This document shows, piece after piece, positions 10,156 to 26,111 of a stretch of 64,000 nt of DNA. The notes beneath the pieces are model-generated. The model ran no database searches, was not told where the DNA came from, and was given only the letters and a program-made list of their open reading frames with translations. Position 1 is the stretch's first letter. Each line of letters starts with the position of its first letter. Source of the DNA: Podarcis muralis (lineage: Eukaryota); the NCBI RefSeq assembly GCF_964188315.1, contig NC_135659.1, positions 50,902,001-50,966,000 of the forward strand. Reading direction: 5' to 3'. Made by a program: the position numbers and the translations under genes.

Positions 10156-13100
10156 ATGGGCTATTCAGCCCTAGCCACAACAACCTTGCTGCTGCTCCTG
10201 GCAATTGCTGCTACGCTGGCAGACGTGGCTGAGAACAGGACCCGAATATGCCAGCCTGCACCACTCTGGAAGATCAATGGGGTGGCCCCCATGGCTGGGA
10301 TGGAGGGCCAAGTGACAGTGGTGGCACTGTTGAAAGCCAGCTGACAGTTCTGCCTCAAGCAGGCCGCCAGGTGAGTTCATAGAGAAGATTGCCTGAGTCA
10401 GGAGCTGTTAGGTCGCAGCCACACCATACATTTGACGCACATGGCTTTCCCCAAAGAGTCATGGGAACCGCAGTTTAAGAGTGCTGGGAACTGTAGCTCT
10501 CTGAGGGGGTAAATCACAGTTCCCATAATGCTTTGGGGAAAGTCACACGCTTTAAAAAGATGGTCTGGATGTGACTAGAAAGTCAGATATGTGTTGGAAC
10601 CCTGTATCTGGTGTTCAGTGGCAATATCACAGCTCTTAAGGTCACATCTTTGTCCCTACGCTTTCTACCAGGAAACACAGAACTGAACTGATTGTTTATA
10701 AGCTCCAGTTCAACAATCAAAAATTGAGGCCCGGGCTACAGCAGGCCAGATATAACACGCATATAGATGGTGGTTGCAATTTTCCTGGTGAATTACAGCT
10801 CAAGTATAATATGTATCATGTAACTTATTGCTGGATCTATGTAGCAGGAACTGCTGTAATGGCAAATCCAGTGAACTGATAAATGAAGGGGCCTCCGTCC
10901 AGCAGTGCAGGCTCATATCCCACATGGTATATGCAGAGGGCAAGGGCTGGAACCTATAATTGTGCACTGCATTTCCTAAACGTTGCTTGTTCTTCCTACC
11001 CACCAGCCTTGGCAGCTTGCAGAGGAAGCTGTCACTTGAAGGAGTGACCAATGTCAGCTTCATGATTGTGAATGAGAAGACTCCTTTCTCCAGGGCCATG
11101 TACTGGGAGCTCAAACGGCATGCCCCAGAGGGAGTTCCTGTTTACCAGCAGCAGATTCTGGAGCCTGACGTCTGGCAAATTCTAGATGGGGACAAGGATG
11201 ACTTCCTGATCTATGACAGGTCAGTGCTTAAGGGAGCAATTCTAACTCCCCACCCACCCAGACTGATAGGGTTTTTGGAGAGTCAGGGCCACTGCTGTGC
11301 ATAGCAGCCGGGGCAGAAGGGAGGGAAGGCAGATCACTGAGCCAGCTTGGAGCTGGTGCAGCAATTGAGCCTGGAAGAAGCCCAGTTCTGGCAGTGGGAC
11401 CATCTCAGGATCCAATGAACTGCAGGGCGGCTCAGTCCAGCTCCTTCCTTGGCTGCTGAAAGCCCCTGCTGCCACCAGCAGGGATCCCATCAGCAGCACT
11501 AGCGGGGGCAGAAGAGGGTGCTCCGTAGGCAGCTGCTGACGGGAGGCCAATGGGGGTCTGCAGGCCTGGGCAGAAGGAAGGAAAGTAAGATACAGTGGTG
11601 CCCCGCAAGACGAATGCCTCGCAAGACGAAAAACCCGCTAGACGAAAGGGTTTTCCGTTTTTGAGTTGCTTCGCAAGACGATTTTCCCTATGGGCTTGCT
11701 TCGCAAGACGTTTTGCGATTTTTTTTCGCTCCCCCCCTCCCTTTTTCTAAGCCGCTAAGCCTTTAATAGCTGCTAAACCGCTAATAGCGCTAATCCGCTA
11801 AGCCGCTAATAGGGTTGCTTCGCAAGACGAAAAAACCGCTAGACGAAGAGACTCGTGGTACGGATTATTTTCGTCTTGCGAGGCACCACTGTATATGGAA
11901 TTCAGGATTCTTGAATACATTATCAAAAAGTCTGTTTGGGGACACATCTGGAAAGAAAGGACATACCATGATGTAAGTGTTTCTCTTTACCATCATGTCT
12001 CGCAACTGTTGTTGAGGAAAACCAGATTGTTCAGGCCAGGTTAGATTCATTTCCAGTGTAAATTAGTGGATTACAGGCTCTCCTGACACTAACTTTATGT
12101 CCATTTGTTTCCTGGCTCTCGGGCTTTGCAGGTGCAGCAGGCTGGCTTTCCACATCCAGCTGCCATACAGTTTTCTGCACTTGCCCTATGTTGAAGCAGC
12201 CGTGCGGTACACACACAGCAAAGACTACTGCGGCAATTGTTCCTGGTACCCCTCTAACAGCAGCCAGGAGGTAGGGACTTGAATCCCCTCATCAACTTCC
12301 TTTTCAACTATTTTATTTAAGCCAGACATTTCCTCATTTGCCCATCCTGAACTTCTGCCTGGGAATTCTAGGTTTCTAATCAGATCGGTCTTACAGCAGG
12401 GATGTGGGAGCAGAAGGTGGAAGGGAGGGTTTTATTATATTGGGCCACTACAGCAAGCAAGGAGAAAGGATGTTGAGATACCACAAAGCATCTTTCATCT
12501 TGACAGGAAGTAAACCATCTTGAAATAAAAACCTCAGAAGCAAATTGCAGATGGAGACACCAGGTCTGCCACAGTCACAGATAGTGTAGCGTGGAGGGGT
12601 CCAGGAGAACCCAGGTGGGAGGACATGCTAAAACCCCCCCCCCCACTTTCAGCTTCTCACACTCCCCCAAGTGCTTTTCTCCCCAGTTGAGTTCAGATAC
12701 TAAAAGTGAGATTGACTTGGAGAAAGACACTTTGGAACAGAAGCTGTGTGGCATCAAGTGCAGGAAAGGTTTGGTTCCCCTCACCCAGGCACCCCTTTTC
12801 TCTAAAGTCAACCCCACCTTCCTGTTTTGCACATGGTGAGGCAAGACCTGGATCTGCTGCTATCATGTACTGCTTGAGCCTCACCCAGTAGCCATTGTCT
12901 GCCCTCAGTTATTGAAAAAAATAAATTAACACCCTTAATTTGTCAGGTTGAAGTGCTTCCTGTTCCCAATGAATGGGAGCATATTGTTCCTTGGACAGAA
13001 GAAATAATAACTGCTGTCTTGTCCTGTGGTGTCACTTCCTGCCCCATCAGTGATCTGAAAGTTCATTCCTCAAGGTGGGATTGCAGGAGGCCCCTGATGT

Positions 13101-13893
13101 ATTACCTATTTTAGTTTTTTGCTGCCCCGATAGCCAATGCAGCAAAATATTATAAATACCTTTTAAGCCATTTCGACCATACCGAGAGTGAAGTCAAACA
13201 GATCTCCTTCCAGGAGTCGGTGCAGGTTTTTCTGATCTGGAGAAATCAAACCTTCTTCCCTCCCTGCTCTTTTGAGAGAGATATATACTTGGCTTAAACT
13301 CCTGTACAGCTTTTTGCCTCTCAAACTTTGGGCTTTTAAAAACCATTTCTACGCCTAAACATCCAGCATGTTTACTCATTTAAACTTCTATTTTACACAT
13401 TCTTTAAAACCACTTTTTAAGTGACTGCCAGGCAATCACCATTCTTCACAGCCAATTTCTCCTGAAAACAGAAAGTAGCAGTTGTTCTGAGCTCAGTTGA
13501 TTTTGGAAGTTTACATATTTTGTCAAAAAGGGCTGAATGCAGATCCCTTCAGATATATACATCCATCTTCACTTTTAAAAATGTGTTTCTGTCTTCACCC
13601 TAAGCCCATCTGTATACTAGAATCTTTCATTACCTTCACAGGTGAATAAGACAGCAAGTACTAACGTGACGACAACTGAGGCATCTGGACACAAAGAGAA
13701 GCACCTGGAAGAACCCAGGTACCATCACGATGAGCCAAGCCAAGAAGCACCTAACACCAAGCACATAGCCCATCACTATTCACATCATGGAGGAGTCGGC
13801 AACCATAAAGCCTTGGGTTTGAGCAGTACACACCAGCCAGTTCTCCACTCTCAGAATCGCTCACAGAAGCATCAAACAAGGGAATCCCCATAA
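10156..13893 (+). CDS. SELENOP2: Selenoprotein P2 (SelPb), 272 aa, with Sec encoded by UGA at 10342-10344 (codon 63)
   Basis: Exons 10156-10370, 11007-11219, 12132-12270 and 13642-13893 are all GT-AG, total 819 nt and are in frame. Signal peptide, VTVVALLKAS-U-QFC (UxxC), GDKDDFLIYDRC, LAFHIQLPYSFLHLPYVE, CGNCS and a His-rich C-terminus are present; there is no Sec-rich tail. A SECIS lies downstream. Confidence 0.93.
11593..11891. mobile_element. Tc1/mariner (Tigger-like) MITE in SELENOP2 intron 2
   Basis: TIRs CAGTGGTGCC(C/T)CGCAAGACGAA, TA flanks, internal CGCAAGACG and CCGCTAA repeats. Confidence 0.9.
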
Positions 13894-14389
13894 AACATTT
13901 AAACTTCAACGTATGCAACACCCAACTGTTAGCCATAAGCATACTTAGCACTAAGCAAGCTTTTAAGAAGAGCCAGGGGGCAAACTTACATGCATCAGAA
14001 GGAAGAAATATGATGGCTCAGTTTTCAGCAGGGGAAGGGAAGTGAATGTTCCACTCCCTAATCATTCAAGGTCTCTCAACAGATAGCAGAGGACACAACA
14101 AAAACTTTTGTTGTGTCATATATGTGATTGGAAAGTTTAACTGCTTGTCCACAATGAGACTTCTATCCTCATTTTGAATCTGTCTCCCAGTTAACCTCAT
14201 ATCCACCAGTTTTGTTCCACCAAGCCTTAAGGTGGTGTTCCTCTTGGGCTCGGATGGATTTTTAGATACATCCCATTTCTGTGGTGAGGACCGCCTAAGG
14301 AAGCCATCTTGTTTTCCTCAGGAACACAGAGCTGCTATGGTAATCAGCTTCTTGAGAAGCCAATTTTGACCCCATTTTTGCATTTCCTG

Positions 14390-14458
14390 CTTTTCTGCAC
14401 TCAATGAAGCATGTGATGTAAACTTTCTGTCACCACATGCTGACACCGTACATAAAAG
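14390..14458 (+). ncRNA. SECIS element (form 2) in SELENOP2 3'UTR
   Basis: ATGA at 14404, helix GCATGTG/CACATGC, apical AAA at 14420-14422 with AC/GT mini-stem, TGAC at 14441 completing the quartet, and lower helix CTTTTCTGCAC/GTACATAAAAG. About 500 nt after the stop codon. Confidence 0.88.
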
Positions 14459-17269
14459 CATGTCCTTGGAGATGGAAGGATGGGGATCAGAACTGGTATT
14501 AGCAGGAGGATGACTGACTGTGGCAGAGAAGGCTGACTTTGAGCCTAGGGCTCAAGATTTTGTACATTAAAGTCCATGCACACAAATTACTAGCTTGTAA
14601 AAAGACATTTGTTGTATTGCTGGAAGTAAAGAACATTTGCGGTTTGTAGGAATGGAAGTGGTGAGACAGAATTAGCCAAGTTTGCAGTTTGATAGAGGTA
14701 TGAAAGACAGAGAAGTCTGAGGTGAGAGTTGAGTTTGTCAGGGCTATGAGAGCTGAACAAGGGAAGAAAATGCCATTTGTCAGGAAAATTCATGAAAAGG
14801 GATGCACTGCTTGCTGATTAAAAGTAGTATAACTGTTTCTGGGAAAGAATGTTGGAAATAAATTCTCTGAAATGTTTGAAGTCTTTGCTCACAATACCTT
14901 AATGTACAAATGGTGCCATTTATTTCAGACAGTACACAGCATTGTAGAACACGTATTCACCTTCAACGTTTAAGAGATGTCCCATAGTTTATCTGCATTT
15001 TTGGCATACTAAGCAGTCCTTATTGAGAATAGTCCAGGTTCCTGTTATTTGTTGAAGGTCAGTGAATTGGTGCACACTGTACAAGTCCTCCACATCCCAG
15101 TTTTAGGAAGCTACTGCTACAAATATTTACGGGAGGGTGTAATCTGTCTTTATTGTATTGTTAATGCTGATATGTATCCACCTATAATCTGTTTATTCCA
15201 AAGTAACCCTAGTTAGTAAAGCCAGCTAGACTAGACTGCAAATGGTGGCAGCTGCCCATAGGTTTATGGCATTTCTTTGAAAGCCTCAATTCCTTTTTAT
15301 TACATCTCAGCTGGTGGCTAAAGGGACCAATCTTCAATTTACAGGACCTGCCATAGGTATAACATCTATAATAGGTAGCTCGCAATTATAACCCTGCTGA
15401 TTACACTCACACATGCTGTAGACTGGAGTGAAGAACTTATTTCAGCCCAAGGGCCACATTTGCTTCTGGGTAGCCTTCTGAGGGCTGCCTGCCAGTGGTG
15501 CACAGGGCCAGAGGCAAAAGGGAATGAAGCAACAATGGTTAATTTTACCTTGCATACCAGTAGGCTAGTTTCTTCATGCTCACACATTCCTCTCTATTCT
15601 TCACCCAGGCAAGCAAGAAGCATGATCAGAATTCAATGAAATAAATGAAATAAAACAGTTCTTCACCTGGCCCCAGATATTCATAAGGCTTGCTGCTGGT
15701 GTCAGGCAAGCTTTTCTAGGAAAGACAGGGCAGTATAGCTGGAAAGACCCAATCAGAGTCCCTGAAAGTGGGGAGATCTAAAGAAGGGCCTCCTGGTATA
15801 ATATTAGTAGTTCAGGAGGTTCTTGTGGAAGAAGGCAGCCTTTGAAATTCTGCAAGCAATAAAAGGGCATTAGGCTGTCAGTGAGGTGCTTATAGTTAAC
15901 AAGCCACCTTTGGTGTAAACAGCATACTTACTGCAGATTTATTTATCCCCTTGTGTATATCAAAACTTTCCTGATATCTGTACATGCTGGCTACTCTTAA
16001 CATACATGTATTAGAGCTATAACATAATTAATAGCTTTTGGTAATATGTCATATAATTAATCGCCTTCACCCAGGGCATAACCAGCACAATGGACTCTAA
16101 ATAAAATACTCTCAACTGTGATTCAACTTGCAACCTTAGTTGCTTAACAACTAGTTTAATGTTCTTAGCAGTCTTGCTCTCCACAATACATAACGTAGTA
16201 ACAAACAAAAACAATATCCCCACCCCACCGTGCAGCCATATGGTAGCTGCTATGATCTGGTGTAATATTTGATTACTTGCCCAACTGACATGCAAAGATT
16301 TAGCTGTCCTTCCCACATGCTGTTCCGTTCCCTTTTTATGTTCCTTTAGTTCATTTCCTACTTATGTACATACCTAGCTGAAATCATCCCTGCCCCCCAG
16401 AAATCTGCAGAGGCCCAATCTACAGCAGCTAGGTCATAATTTAATTGTTAAGAGACTATTTTCTTGCTGATAGTTTTGTACCAAACAAAGTAATTATATG
16501 GCTGGCTTGTTTTGGTTTTTTTAACATTCCAATTGTATTTACAATCTCTTCCCTTTATTTCTATGTACAGTATTACCATTATTAATTACCAAAGAAAAAA
16601 TATTCAGTAGTACTAGTGCTAAAAAAAGATGGGCAAAATTATGTTTTGCTTAGGACAACAACATTCCTACCTAATGCTGGCCTTGGGCTCTGATCCAGCT
16701 TTCCTGATGCTCTCTGCCCCAGCCCACAGCTCCCATTATCCAAACTAAACTCCTTTGCGTCATGTCCTGTTTGCTTACATTTGCAGCAGAGTCCACAGGT
16801 TCACAGCAAAACTGGAGCAAGGCTATTATTATCATGTTTAATGCTAATCTCATCTAACATGCAGGTCAAATATTTGCTAAAGATCCTCTTTAAACTGGCC
16901 CCTCTATTTGCAGCAGCCAGAAAATCTCTTATAGTTTGCCTGTTTATGCCTACTCAGAAAAAAGCCTCATTTGAGTTCTATGGCACTTACTGCCAAGTAT
17001 GTGGGTATAGCATTGCAGATGTAGTCTCTTTTTGATGGACAAGGCTGGCCCTACCATTGGGCAGAGTGAAGCAGCCACCTCAGATGGTAGATGGTAGGGG
17101 GATAAAAGTGGAGGCAAGATGTTGGAAGAGAATTGCCTGTGCCACACACAGCCTCCCCTGCTGCCCTCAGGCATGGTGGAGGATGCAATCCCATTGCGAA
17201 TGGAAAAAGAAGACATCTGAAGGCCGCCCTGCATAGGGAAGTTTTGTAATGTTTAATTATGTTTTTATA

Positions 17270-17350
17270 TATGTTGGAAGCAGTCCAGAGTGGCTGGGGC
17301 AACCCAGTCAGATGGGTGGGGTGCAAATAATAAAACTATTTTTATTATTA
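17270..17350 (+). mobile_element. LINE (L2-like) 3' tail
   Basis: GCAGTCCAGAGTGGCTGGGGCAACCCAGTCAGATGGGTGGGG...AATAATAAA plus (TTA)n. A closely related copy is at ~42280-42350 and a more distant one at ~50050-50160. Confidence 0.6.
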
Positions 17351-17973: not shown

Positions 17974-18118
17974 NNNNNNNNNNNNNNNNNNNNNNNNNNN
18001 NNNNNNNNNNNNNNNNNNNNNNNNNNNNNNNNNNNNNNNNNNNNNNNNNNNNNNNNNNNNNNNNNNNNNNNNNNNNNNNNNNNNNNNNNNNNNNNNNNNN
18101 NNNNNNNNNNNNNNNNNN
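17974..18118. other. Assembly gap (145 N)
   Basis: Run of N. Confidence 1.
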
Positions 18119-20539
18119 GTGTCCATGTCTATTTCTCCATGGAATCCACACTATGGGCTGCCTTCAGGAGATGTAGTACTTCTGTTGGAAGCCTCAAAAG
18201 TGGGACAGCATTAGGCTTTAATCAGCAACGGAGGAGGCAGCTGAGGGGTAAATATGCTTTAATGCCTCTTAAGTACACTTTCCCTGCCCAATCCACTTTC
18301 CCCTGTTGGGCAGTGAAGTAAAAAGAAACAAAAACCTATCTAGCCAATTCAGAGGGGTTTTGTTAACTAGCTTCATTATTCAATTAAAGTGTCTAACGGT
18401 GCTGTAGCAACTCATTTATAGAAAATGGTCTGGCACATTTAAAGTTTACACATGTAGAGTAATTGCTTCCATTGGAATGTTATGTTCATATAGTATTCAG
18501 GAGTATTTACATAGGTGATACAATATAAAATCCAACATGCTAATGAGTTTCTAAAACTTATTTAAGAGCCATTCCCTATAGATAGCCCATGTTTGATTAT
18601 TCTTTAAGTTTGCAATTTTATACATACTGATTACAGTGTAAAATCTTACATGCACACTGAAATCACTAGGATTTTCTTCTGGATACGAATGCATGGGATT
18701 CTGCTTTGAATCTTTCACCATCTGTTCTATAATAAGAGTCCTCACATGTAATTCCCAAGTATAAAACTCATTTATCAAATAATTCATTCAAAGCAGTATG
18801 CTTCTGGTTTACAATGATATTCATTTTATAATGAGCTCAGAAAAGTTTAAGAAATTATTTCAAATCATCATTTTAAACAATATTTCTACTGACAACTCAG
18901 AAGTCCTCTCGTGAATATGTAGGTTTTATAATGTATAGCTTCTACAAAATATTGGTAGAGCTTCATAAAATACAGTAAGAATAATTACTTCACTCTAATG
19001 TATATGATTCTATTTTTGCATGAAAGTACATTTGAAAACTAGCTGTGAGCTCAAAACTCCTAAAAATAAGAACAGTCTTCTCCAGCACATCTAAATATTT
19101 TATTTTTGTTTTAGGTATGGGTTGCTGCAACTTTAATGGCAACTTTCTGCAATTTTAAATCCCACACCTACAAAAAAAAGTTTTAAGAACAGCTTACAAC
19201 ATATAATTTTAAAAAGCATAATGATTAATCTCCAGGTTCTGTGGCACCAGTTCTTATCCTGCTTATCTTCACGTGCTTTGGAGGTGTGGTAAGCTAGATT
19301 TCTACATCCATAATCGACAGTGTTATCTGCCAATATCATAATGATGTTGAAAAGTTGTGCGCTCCGCATGCAAGGATCAATGTGGCCATTGTTCTTGGTA
19401 CGCAAGTATGAAGCTCTTCTGATTCCTAATCCTCATTAATCTTACTCCTTGTACACAAGAAGAAATAGCAGCTGCCTTTGTTAGCTCCCCTCTATTTTTC
19501 TAGCAGTTAATTCTGTTTGTCTGTGTGATACACCAGATGCCTATTATTACCTTCACAGGTGTGTAACACAGCAAAGACTAGTATGATGGCAAGTGAGGAT
19601 ACAAAACATGGAGAATCAGAAGGAAAGGAGAGCCAAGGAACACTCAGCCCTGGGTACAAAGCTCACAGAAAATAGAAAACAGCTACAGAAGCCTTGGGTG
19701 TGTGCCAGCACATTTCAGCCACTCCTCTTAGAGCCACCCATAGAAGCAGGGCAAGGGGGATAAAGTGAAGGGACTGCCTCAGAAGAATGTACTTTGAATT
19801 AACCAGAAGTCTGCTAGTAATCCTTACTGCATTAATCCACTTGACGCTATCAATTTAAAAGAGGATCCCAGAAATAGGAGGTATTTGAATATCACCATCA
19901 TAATTGATGTTCTGTAATCTTAGAAAATCAAGTCCTTTTAATATAGTGCCTTGTGGGGACATTTCCTAATGTTAGGTGGCAGTGCCACATTGTGGGTTCT
20001 GTCAGTTAGTGCAGCAAGTACTGTTTCCCGCTTCCTCAGGATATTCCCCAAATTGCAGGATGTTCAACCTGAATGGGTTCTCAAGATCAAGCACTTTTTG
20101 CAGCTCTTTTGTTTTCTAATGCTTGGACAAGTAAAGGAAGTTTGCTTTTAAGATGCCATTTTATCAATTTATATATCATATATTACTCCTTTCATATTTC
20201 TGGGAAGTATGCTGATCCTCCAATTTACTGAGCGCAGGTGTGAAACATGTAATCTTGATCTACCTCAGTCTGGCTTCAGGTTGTTTTGGGACCTAGTCAG
20301 CATTAGTGGTCCTGATGGGTGACCTTGATCACAGGAGACATAGGAGGGTGTGACCCTGCAGCTCACTCTTTTTTGACAACAATCATGGTACCCACTTGGA
20401 CCAGCCATGTTGGCTGGGGATTTGTGGCACTGTACTTCACTGGTTCTGTTCCTTTCTGCAGGACCTTTCCAGACTATAAACCCCTGGCATTTTTACTATT
20501 GGGTCTCTCACGGTACCATCACATCCCCAATGCTTCTAA

Positions 20540-21667: not shown

Positions 21668-24600
21668 TTAGTTCTGCTTGGAGAAGTACTCTCTACTCTT
21701 CTGAACATCAGGCTTGATAGTGTCTTTCCCAGGATGCCAGCCAGCAGGACACACTGAGGAGATAATAATATTAACTTTTAAGTTACTCCTGGAGTACAGA
21801 CCGAAAACAGCATACAAAGAACTAAGTTGTTATGTCCATCACTAGACTTCACACAAGATGACTTGGATCACTACAACCTCCGTCATCTATTTGACTAACT
21901 TCTGGAACTAGCAGCAGTCACCACCCAATCTCTCCTACAGATGGGCTTCTTGATGCAATTGTGTACCTGAGATGTACAGGACAGCTGCCTCTTGGAAAAA
22001 CTGAAGTGATTCACAGCTTATGCATCTAAAATACTAGCCAAATAAATGCCTGACAGCAACAAAAGACTGAAATAATGACTGAGAGCAGGGAGGTTGGATG
22101 GAATACAGGCCAGAGCTGAGAGCGAAAGACTAGTATTATGTGTCCATTGAAAAATAACAGCTGAAAGAGCCGCTTTGAGGGACTGAATGAAATGGGAATG
22201 AGTTTAGAGAACCAATGAGAGGCATATGTAGAAAAGGATAGACATTATGAAAGTTAGAACAGTCTGTACACGTTATGTTCCTTAAGTAAATACATGTTTC
22301 TGTTTTAACTGTTCTGGTCAGGGTAGAGTCTAACATAAATATATCTCACTGACTAAGAATATAAAGGAGGAGCCCTATTGCTTTCTGTAATTAAATAGGT
22401 GGTTGATGCAGGTATTTTAAGGAAAGTCTTGATTCAGTGAAAAAGGAGGATTGCCCTTAGTGGCCACCTGGAAACAAACCTTTGCAAGGGAGCCTGCGAA
22501 TATCATAATATGGTGGGCAATGTGGCGGAATAGTAATATATACGAGTTATAACTGACATTTATTTGTTGGCAGTAGGGAAGAAAAGGGGGCATGTTGTGC
22601 CCTGAGGGGGCACAAAATATACCATATTTTTCTGTGTACAAGTCTAGGTTTTTTCCCCTAAAAAATTATGTTAAAAATTAGGGGGCGTCTTATATATGGA
22701 TAGTGCTGAGGTTGGACTAGCGATTGGTTGTTGCTGCAAAAATACATGGGGGTGTCTTATAGTCGGAAAAATATGGTATGTTCTGTAGGAAATGGCTTCA
22801 AACAAGAATCCCACAGAGAAGACAAGCAAATAATGTGAGGTGCCAACGCTTTCCCTAACACAGCAGCCCCCAAATGCAACATTTGAGATTTCTTCCCATG
22901 GGAATGAATGGTAGCTACTCACTTATGTGGGAAAATGCTACTGTGTATATGGGATACTGTCTTTACAGGGACAGCAGTTACTGTCTACCTCTGCCTCTAG
23001 TTTCTCGGTGGAAAGATGTTCTGCCCCTCCACCAGCTGTCAATACTATCTCTTATTTGTCCTGTAGATATGGCTAGAAACAAGAGAGACTCTTAAAAGCC
23101 TATTTCTATTTGCCTATTCCCGGACTTTATTTTAGCCATACAAGATGCTACTCAGGAACTGCATTTTTATCAATGAGATACTCTTTTAGAGAACTACAGT
23201 GGTACCTCGGGTTAAGTACTTAATTTGTTCCAGAGGTCCGTTCTTAATCTGAAACTGTTCTTAACCTGAAGCACCACTTTAGCTAACAGGGCCTCCTGCT
23301 GCTGCCGCGCCGCCGGAGCACGATTTCTGTTCTCAACCTGAAGCAAAGTTCTTAACCCGAAGCACTATTTCTGGGTTAGTGGAGTCTGTAACCTGAAGCT
23401 TATGTAACCCAAGGTACCACTGTATAGTCCTAGATTTTCACATTTATGTTTCTTTAAACATAGTATCCCCTTTTGCAGGGAAGAGGATACACTATGAACT
23501 GTTAAGTGCATCCTCCTTTTTCACTGAGAAACTTAACGGCAGTTCATGCTTGCCTAGCCTGAACATGACAGTCTTACCTTCTCCATGTTTGTCTGTAAAC
23601 TGAAAAGCCTGAACTAGCCGGAGTGTTTCATCAACTGAGCGACCAACAGGGAGATCATTGATTGTGATCTGGCGTAAGATTCCCTTATCATCAATGATGA
23701 AGAGGCCCCTAAAGAGAAAAGGCACACACACACACAAACACTTAAATGTATGGTGGCAGAATCCAAAAAACTACAAGCTAGCATTCAATACCAAGTTCTG
23801 TCCCCTTTTAGTTCTTCTGAAAACATCAAAACCAGTTCTCTTAAGATCTGGTACAACTTCTACCCTATATATAAATTAAAAGCAAAACTATATGGAGACT
23901 CATTTGCAATTCCAAGCACTAAAACCTATATAGAACATTTCATAAAGGAATGTGGTAAAACTTCCTACGTACAGACTCTTTACCTTTCACCCTTCAAGAG
24001 ACTTCTAATTTGAATGTTCAAACTTTTGTTACAAGATACGAGCACTATTCTAAAGAACAGTGTTTAAATTTGAATTGGTGTTTTTCAACCCAGGTGCTGA
24101 TAGCGGATCTGGGAAGATGCCAAACGGAGATTGCACATTCACTTTCCTCTTCCCAGTGAAAAGGACATTCATAATTAAGGGCAGCCTTATCAACAGAGCT
24201 AGTAAAGTGTGCATGTTGACTCAAAACTTGCATCACTTATTTTCTGTGGGCTTCTCCCTCTGATTAAGTTTTATCTTTTAGAACCTTTATCATGCAGTGC
24301 TCTATATACCACAAGTCACTAAGAGGCTGCAGTGGTAACCTTACCTGTAGGAAATGCCTTCATCTTCTTTTAATACTCCATACTTTTTAGAAATTTCACG
24401 GTTTGTGTCAGACACCAAGGGAATACGCATGCAGCCTAGTCCACCCTGTTTTTTGGGTGTGTTGATCCTGTTAACAAGAAGAAGAAAGGCTTTTATAAAG
24501 CAGGTTAGTATTTCAGTAATATCCTTGTCCTTCTGTACACTTACACATTCGACTGCAGCAGAATATCTAAGAGATTCAGTGGTCTTTGCAAAAAAGGCAG

Positions 24601-26111
24601 TGACCCAAAACTTTCTGTCTAGTTTCAAGCGCATGTCACTGGAGTGGTGTGGGAACAGCTTGCTATTGGTCTGGTTCCACACTGCTCCAATAAAGGAAAC
24701 CCACATGGTTCTTACCATTCTTACCATAATGGCCAGAGAAGCAGCTTCATTGGGTCTAAGGTTACAGCTCAAGCTGCTCAAGTTCAGGGACTTAAGATGA
24801 CTACACTTAAAAAGCTACAGGACCGGATCAGAACAGGATTGTGAAGGGTGGGCAAAAAACCCTTAACCAACCCCCTTTCTAGCACAAATTGATTTGTGAG
24901 CAGGATGGTGTTTTCTCTCTCTTGCACAGGACATGAGGCTGGGTTAGGGGGGAAAAGAAATAGCTGGCAATAGTTACTTGTTGGTAGCTGCTTCTTTCAT
25001 CCATTTAACAGGCTTATAACTTTTAATGTAGGAGACCCCCAGAGAATAAAAAGGCTTAGGTCCAAATATTCTTACCAGGCAAGATGGCAAAAGTGAGAGT
25101 CGACAGAAGCACCAATCACTTCACAGTTGATTTTTCTAAACTCCTCAGATCTGTCACTGAATGCAATGATCTCAGTTGGGCAGACAAAGGTAAAGTCAAG
25201 TGGATAGAAGAAGAACACAACATATTTCCCTGGAGAAGAAGGTAACAAGTTAAGATTCCCACTACAGCAAAGCTGGAAGCAATTCAAAAGTCACAAATTT
25301 CTGATTCCAAACATTAACAGCTTTGTGGCATTCTACCCCAGAGGTGAGGAGCCTTTTTTGGCATGGCAGGCCAGTTGTTTATCTTCTGCCACCATGGCTA
25401 GCAAACTTTGCACACGATCACCTTACTTGTCAGTCATCTGATGTCATACTGGCACCAGTTGATTTGACAGGTGAGTTGGCCCACTAGGGAGGGGAAGAGA
25501 GAGCTATATACATCACAAAGCAGGATTGAACTCCCTGGGCATCTGCCACACCTGAGGTCACATATGGGGCAGGTGGGTGTGGTTTAAGAAAAACAGCCTA
25601 GTGAGCCTAGTTTGGACTGTAGGCCGAAAGTTTCCCACCCATGCTCTCTTCTCTCCTTGATCTCCAAATAAACAAAAGAAGTGCTGCAAATAAAAGTCAT
25701 AACTATTTTCTTCCAAACTAGCAGAAGTGACACATGCAAGGACAACAAAATGACACATGCAAGGACAACAAAATACTAGAACAAAATAGGGTACCTACAT
25801 GCAGATGTGTTAGTAACTTTCTGAGGACTTATTTGCAATACTATCCAATGCATTTTTGTGAATGCCAACAAAACTTCCATTTCAGAATCAAAGAAGGTTA
25901 TGTTGTTAGTCCAGACAGTTAAGTTAGGTTTTTATACATGTCACATACTTATCAGTACCTCAATAAACCCTTGCCTACAAATACAACATGCTTTATTGCA
26001 CTTACCTTTGTACTGAGAGAGTGAGATTTCTTTGAATTGCCCATCTGGCATTACAGCCGTGGCCAGAAAGTCTGGGGCTGGCTTCCCAATGTGAGCATCT
26101 CCTGCTGACAT
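21668..26111 (-). CDS. PRDX1: Peroxiredoxin-1, 199 aa
   Basis: Exons 26111-26006, 25229-25076, 24467-24345, 23708-23578 and 21753-21668 total 600 nt, all [17 protein letters not shown] (peroxidatic Cys52), GGLG, GEVCPAGW (resolving Cys173) and the YF motif are present. Confidence 0.97.
22622..22776. mobile_element. Tc1/mariner (Tc2-like) MITE
   Basis: TIR CCATATTTTTC / GAAAAATATGG with TA flanks. Confidence 0.8.
23197..23422. mobile_element. Tigger-like MITE, copy 2
   Basis: CAGTGGTACCT TIRs, TA flanks. Near-identical to 37145-37370 and the reverse complement of 3426-3650. Confidence 0.9.

Follow-up and report, generated by a model that had tools for sequence, protein, structure and literature searches.

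The SELENOP2 (selenoprotein Pb) gene of the wall lizard Podarcis muralis: a predicted single-selenocysteine reading frame followed by a form-1-like SECIS element

Gene structure

A stretch of 64,000 nt from Podarcis muralis (assembly GCF_964188315.1, contig NC_135659.1, forward strand positions 50,902,001–50,966,000) is here termed the window, and all positions refer to it unless stated. On its (+) strand is an open reading frame that is divided into four coding exons and carries one in-frame TGA. A selenocysteine insertion sequence (SECIS) element is found downstream of the reading frame. Sequence comparisons indicate that the locus is very probably a functional SELENOP2 (selenoprotein Pb) gene of the Podarcis wall lizard.

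The four coding exons are at positions 10156–10370, 11007–11219, 12132–12270 and 13642–13893 (+). Joined, they give a sequence of 819 nt, i.e. 272 codons and the stop codon TAA at 13891–13893, and the AG/GT dinucleotides are found at all splice boundaries. The start codon, ATG at 10156, has an A at position –3 and a G at position +4. Coding exon 1 extends from this ATG to a GT donor and displays a hydrophobic N-terminal sequence that resembles a signal peptide, the TGA predicted to encode selenocysteine (Sec, U), and the motif U-Q-F-C, of which the TGA would specify the first residue. The TGA, at 10342–10344, is codon 63 and is the sole internal stop in the 272 codons. It is followed by CAG TTC TGC CTC AAG CAG GCC GCC AG and then by the GTGAGT donor at 10371. 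A mechanical listing of open reading frames ends the exon 1 frame at this TGA (position 10344). The last coding exon contains no further TGA and is open until the TAA; it encodes a fast-evolving tail that contains His residues.

A preliminary description of the locus, made from the sequence alone, placed the TGA at 10342, the donor at 10371, the end of the TAA at 13893, and three SECIS motifs at 14404 (ATGA), 14420 (AAA) and 14441 (TGAC). All of these coordinates are correct. Its reading of a single Sec in a UxxC motif, four coding exons and the terminal stop is borne out by the spliced frame, by conservation of the TGA and by the ratio of nonsynonymous to synonymous substitution rates (Ka/Ks). 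The five N-x-S/T sequons that it listed are present as well, and two additional ones, NSS and NRS, bring the number in the 272-codon frame to seven.

Family assignment and phylogenetic position

The exon pieces were searched separately against Pfam, and the first three display the SelP_N family (PF04592) above its cut-off of 23.2 bits. The scores are 36.3 bits for exon 1, 86.9 bits for exon 2 (E = 1.7e-24) and 54.6 bits for exon 3 (E = 1.3e-14). The matches are in order along the family model: residues 28–62 of exon 1 correspond to model positions 2–36, exon 2 corresponds to positions 47–116, and exon 3 to positions 118–161. The unmatched model positions 37–46 are exactly filled by the ten residues U-Q-F-C-L-K-Q-A-A-S, which start at the TGA. 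The TGA is thus at the redox-active Sec position of the family, SelP_N position 37, and TGA-CAG-TTC-TGC represents positions 37–40 by colinearity.

With exon 2 as the query, an exhaustive HMMER search retrieved 129 relatives. Those that are named are annotated as selenoprotein Pb of squamates, crocodilians, birds, amphibians and fishes. Many of the 129 begin at an internal Met of exon 2 or bypass the Sec codon by splicing. The Sec position is a TGA in the orthologues and a Cys in the frog and shark homologues. A maximum-likelihood tree (IQ-TREE) was made from 19 family proteins, with the window represented by its post-Sec protein. The tree separates SELENOP1 from SELENOP2 with 100/100 support and places the window protein inside SELENOP2, where its neighbors are P. 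lilfordi, a squamate transcript, alligator and pigeon. At the protein level the P. lilfordi locus (L006) is 97%–100% identical to the window, which agrees with the origin of the window from a Podarcis wall lizard. The SELENOP2/SelPb identity put forward in the preliminary description is upheld by both the SelP_N matches and this placement.

The SelPb proteins of non-eutherian vertebrates (Alligator mississippiensis, Columba livia and zebrafish sepp1b) have the SelP_N domain in common with the window gene. Both have their only Sec within UxxC, in the same column of the alignment, are without a Sec-rich C-terminal tail, have one SECIS, and belong to the SELENOP2 clade. The coding exon structure is identical among the squamates and the alligator compared, and HPDL and PRDX1 flank the gene. 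The window gene differs in two respects. Its C-terminal tail is poorly conserved, even within the squamates: the last exon is 97.6% identical to that of P. lilfordi and 44%–53% identical to that of other squamates. In addition, helix III of the SECIS of other sauropsid orthologues is absent from the Podarcis SECIS.

SELENOP1, the plasma selenium transporter, has an N-terminal thioredoxin-like domain with UxxC, belongs to the same Pfam family and has the same first Sec position. It departs from the window gene, with its one Sec and one SECIS, in carrying a multi-Sec C-terminal domain and, as a rule, two SECIS elements. The two genes are also on opposite sides of the 100/100 split.

Fishes, reptiles, birds and non-placental mammals have SELENOP2, and its loss predates the placental mammals (PMC3316567). 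In Anura and in sharks its Sec has been replaced by Cys (bioRxiv 10.1101/2025.05.29.656587), and the fish SELENOP2 genes have one SECIS (PMC6301783). The preliminary description gave the distribution as fish and birds; this is correct for those groups and too narrow overall, as reptiles and non-placental mammals also have the gene and Cys forms are present in frogs and sharks. As the literature already documents both a reptilian SELENOP2 and the loss of the gene in placental mammals (PMC3316567; bioRxiv 10.1101/2025.05.29.656587), the finding is unsurprising to a specialist. The window gene is an already known gene, correctly read, and not a new kind of system.

Evidence for decoding of the in-frame UGA

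A TGA is found at the same codon in six sauropsid genomes, i.e. P. lilfordi, Lerista, Gekko, Phrynocephalus, Crotalus and Alligator. In the eight codons past the TGA the differences among relatives are mostly synonymous, and the donor site is at the same place. Selection was analyzed over 124 codons downstream of the TGA (the remainder of exon 1 with exons 2 and 3). The Ka/Ks values versus six relatives are 0.07–0.14, which indicates that the post-TGA codons are under strong purifying selection.

Three RNA-derived contigs from public runs, L001, L002 and L012, are colinear with the spliced model over its three junctions and keep the in-frame TGA. The junctions of exon 2 are exact in these spliced transcripts, and those of exon 3 are found in all three. 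Nucleotide identity to the window is 79% for L001 and L002, and 80% over the coding part for L012. In L012 the TGA and the orthologous SECIS are together on a single spliced RNA. Two other sequences, L003 and L004, are of unspliced genomic type, end in exon 3 and carry no information on the SECIS, and exon 1 of the pigeon gene was not found in locus L011.

The match of L001 and L002 to the window ceases upstream of position 10134, at an AG acceptor in the window. An additional non-coding exon further upstream is implied by this, and a short-word BLAST search of the window did not locate it. The SELENOP2 mRNA of this locus thus probably consists of four coding exons and one upstream non-coding exon.

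The SECIS element

The SECIS is at positions 14388–14460 (+) and is recognized by its fold, by conservation within the 3′ untranslated region (3′UTR), by covariation and by a covariance model. Helix I is formed by positions 14388–14400 paired with 14448–14460. The core is within an internal loop, where ATGA at 14404–14407 is opposite GA at 14442–14443 (the TGAC being at 14441–14444). Helix II is formed by positions 14408–14418 and 14431–14441 and has eight Watson-Crick pairs, an A.C mismatch and two further pairs. The AAA at 14420–14422 is unpaired and is 12 nt after the ATGA, in a 12-nt apical loop that starts with U-AAA. The element thus resembles the eukaryotic SECIS (RF00031) in its AUGA...GA core, its helix II, the 12 nt from the core to the unpaired AAA, and a helix I under the internal loop. 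The predicted fold of positions 14385–14465 has an energy of –19.7 kcal/mol (z = –2.98 versus shuffled sequences). A loose SECIS pattern occurs at three places in the 64 kb (both strands), and eight of eight helix II pairs are found only at the 14404 element. The SECIS is 511 nt past the TAA and about 1.1 kb past the UGA in the spliced mRNA; the latter spacing is well inside the range of other selenoprotein mRNAs.

Alignment with Lerista, Gekko, Phrynocephalus, Crotalus, Alligator and pigeon shows that the SECIS is the best-conserved island of the 3′UTR. In an alignment of eight SECIS sequences there is no variation at the UGA, AA and GA bases. With the three-helix structure, 86.6% of the alignment cells are paired, versus 33%–47% when the partners are slid. 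Ten pairs have changed on both sides, and the observed covariation score is reached by none of 500 shuffles. Helices I and II also emerge independently from RNAalifold. A covariance model derived from seven orthologues, without any Podarcis sequence, has a single match in the 64 kb, at positions 14385–14463 (+), with 67.8 bits and an E-value of 1.2e-15; this score includes plain sequence homology and indicates orthology as well as structural fit. The fold and the model match both confirm the SECIS position proposed earlier. The comparative sequence evidence for the predicted SECIS is decisive. Since conservation in other reptiles extends to the TGA, the splice junctions and the hairpin alike, the unit is far beyond what is expected by chance.

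Two of the orthologous sequences display UUGA in place of the AUGA core (CTCATTGA): L007 at about positions 12129–12135 (Phrynocephalus forsythii) and L012 at about positions 1358–1364 (SRR12676605). A U at the first position of the SECIS core is unusual. The remainder of the SECIS is conserved in both. Presence of the change in two independent data sets, a genome and a transcript assembly, suggests that it is probably real.

A putative polyadenylation signal, AATAAA, is at positions 14857–14862 (+), about 400 nt downstream of the SECIS, and implies a 3′UTR of about 1 kb. Both this motif and the adjoining downstream block are retained in Lerista, Gekko, Crotalus and P. lilfordi, thus the 3′UTR most likely extends to about position 14880 and includes the SECIS. 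There are also ATTAAA motifs at 14566 and 14817, both of them downstream of the SECIS.

Evidence against the assignment and alternative explanations

Several observations weigh against a functional selenoprotein gene at this locus. The transcript support comes from relatives (L001, L002 and L012) and not from Podarcis muralis. Rfam reports no SECIS in the 64-kb window at its gathering threshold, and an Rfam search of 1.4 kb shows no SECIS at E ≤ 10. The gathering score of the Rfam SECIS_1 model (RF00031) is 35 bits, and the model applied to the 111 nt of the element alone gives 16.4 bits, so the Podarcis element is below threshold. In the window and in P. lilfordi, 7 nt of helix III are missing and a 12-nt apical loop is left. 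There are also two mismatches found only in Podarcis, an A.C in helix II and a C.U in helix I, at positions that are paired in the others. The loss of helix III together with the two mismatches could lower the efficiency of the Podarcis SECIS.

With respect to the Rfam result, SECIS_1 aligns with the 111 nt over its full length, and the AUGA, AAA and UGA motifs are all in register. The pigeon orthologue has a SECIS_1 score of 17.5 bits, likewise under the gathering score, and none of seven orthologous loci passes at the gathering threshold. As the pigeon element scores alike and all seven loci fall short, the Rfam shortfall is due to a weak model and not to a weak element. The Rfam gathering threshold is uninformative for the SELENOP2 SECIS lineage.

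The differences in the SECIS itself are the basis of the alternative that survives best. According to this explanation the gene is real and the Podarcis SECIS has been weakened, such that Sec insertion is inefficient, most ribosomes stop at codon 63, and the locus may be in early decay; the mRNA would be open to nonsense-mediated decay, with three exon junctions downstream of the UGA. The 7-nt helix III deletion and the A.C and C.U mismatches, as compared with Lerista, Gekko, Crotalus, Alligator and pigeon, are in agreement with it, as is the fold energy of –19.7 kcal/mol versus –22 to –42 kcal/mol in the orthologues. However, two Podarcis genomes both keep an intact frame, the TGA and every splice site. 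The 91-nt SECIS region is 100% identical between the two genomes, versus 98.3% for the whole 3′UTR. In Podarcis the eight Watson-Crick pairs of helix II are uninterrupted, whereas an A.G mismatch is present in the Lerista helix. Form-1 SECIS elements, moreover, are fully functional in several selenoprotein mRNAs. A weakened SECIS with inefficient Sec insertion is therefore considered improbable.

The other explanation, that the TGA is a plain nonsense codon in a pseudogene or in a gene for a 62-residue peptide, with the downstream exons and the hairpin as non-functional leftovers, would agree with the ORF call that stops at 10344 and with the lack of an Rfam SECIS at the curated threshold, but it can be dismissed almost entirely because the TGA is kept at the same codon from lizards to alligator, the post-TGA codons are under strong purifying selection, the transcripts of relatives are spliced and the SECIS covaries; the pseudogene form of it is rejected on TGA conservation and Ka/Ks.

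Change of SECIS architecture in Podarcis

A helix III of 4–6 bp comes after the AA(A/C) in Lerista, Gekko, Crotalus, Alligator, pigeon and L012, for example CCGGG...CCCGG in the pigeon. This is the form-2 architecture. Helix III cannot form in the window or in P. lilfordi, due to the 7 missing nt. RNAfold shows a lone A-U pair, and this pair is gone in the centroid structure. Podarcis has also gained pairs, with A-U and U-A at positions where Lerista has A.G and G.U.

By its predicted structure, the Podarcis SECIS is form-1-like, and this is a derived state common to two independent Podarcis assemblies. It differs in this respect from its orthologues, all of the form-2 type among those listed above. 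The preliminary description had labeled the element form 2; this label does not apply to Podarcis, where the AAA is in a 12-nt apical loop without helix III, and describes instead the state of the orthologues. A 7-nt deletion in the Podarcis lineage, which would have turned an orthologous form-2 SECIS into a form-1 SECIS with the selenoprotein gene left intact, is considered somewhat more probable than not.

Predicted function of the gene product

The translated product is predicted to have 272 residues, with a signal-peptide-like N-terminus, a thioredoxin-like SelP_N domain with U-x-x-C, and a short His-containing tail. The hydrophobic N-terminal sequence, MGYSALATTTLLLLLAIAATLA, may be a signal peptide, and the protein would then be secreted and N-glycosylated; secretion and glycosylation are both plausible from the sequence features. 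The presence of one Sec and the lack of a Sec-rich tail suggest a redox protein that would act via UxxC rather than a selenium carrier.

In eukaryotic Sec insertion the kink-turn core of the SECIS binds SECISBP2, and this brings eEFSec with Sec-tRNA[Ser]Sec to the UGA. By this established mechanism, the SECIS of the window gene would recruit SECISBP2 and eEFSec with Sec-tRNA, and the UGA at codon 63 would be read as selenocysteine and not as a stop. Both Sec insertion and redox function are inferred. With three exon junctions past the UGA, the mRNA may be a target of nonsense-mediated decay under limiting selenium.

Neighboring genes and other sequences in the window

The upstream neighbor of SELENOP2, at positions 1133–2368 (–), is an HPDL-like single-exon open reading frame of 411 codons with Glyoxalase-family domains. 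The downstream neighbor, at about positions 21700–26100 (–), is a multi-exon gene for a 2-Cys peroxiredoxin of the PRDX1 type (AhpC-TSA). Portions of the order (MUTYH-)HPDL-SELENOP2-PRDX1 can be recognized in Lerista, P. lilfordi, Crotalus, Alligator and pigeon. HPDL and PRDX1 both adjoin the gene in P. lilfordi; the PRDX1 side is seen in Lerista and Crotalus, and the HPDL side in Alligator and pigeon. This common neighborhood is further support for the SELENOP2 identity of the gene.

Between SELENOP2 and PRDX1 there is a decayed SELENOP2-like fragment, at window positions 19285–19407 and 19546–19598 (+). The exon-3-like stretch has 37% identity over 41 aa and contains three in-frame stops. 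The second part, about 140 nt on, is 53 nt long and matches the boundary of intron 3 and exon 4 at 79%. A counterpart is found in P. lilfordi (L006, positions 18011–18133) and a weaker exon-3-like match in Lerista (L005, positions 17228–17320), which may point to an old duplication. Parts of the relic resembling exon 1 or exon 2 were not found, and there is an N gap at 17974–18118 upstream of it. The sequence VVLLLEAS, at 18173–18196 after the N gap, was considered as an exon 1; its next codon is AAA and not TGA, and the similarity was judged to be due to chance. A tblastn search of the window shows no second intact SELENOP gene, only the decayed exon-3-like fragment.

Intron 2 of the SELENOP2 gene contains a 305-nt element at positions 11590–11894. 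Its 25-nt terminal inverted repeats (ATACAGTGGTGCCCCGCAAGACGAA and complement) are 96% complementary, and inside it are multiple copies of a TGC(C/T)TCGCAAGACGA motif together with GCCGCTAA repeats. The element looks like an insertion of a miniature inverted-repeat transposable element (MITE) type transposon.

Existing annotation and significance

Both existing Podarcis models of SELENOP2 are wrong. The P. lilfordi model (P0134, GenBank) begins at the internal Met91. The P. muralis model (P0142, UniRef), whose exon 1 is identical to that of the window, splices '...VVALL' to 'GSLQRK...', which drops the Sec codon, and then enters intron 3. The expectation in the preliminary description that gene callers would truncate or fragment this gene is realized in these two models, and the same problem is database-wide: good annotation is reported for just 11% of vertebrate selenoprotein genes in Ensembl and for 5% of those in GenBank (PMC12822975).

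The chief value of the analysis is in annotation. It provides a correct model of the lizard gene and adds one more case to the database-wide mis-annotation of selenoproteins (PMC12822975). The disappearance of helix III in Podarcis is of minor evolutionary interest and is the sole point that is mildly new. If the proposed deletion is correct, it would represent a natural switch of SECIS architecture at a single locus, which may be used to ask what role helix III has in the efficiency of Sec insertion in vivo.

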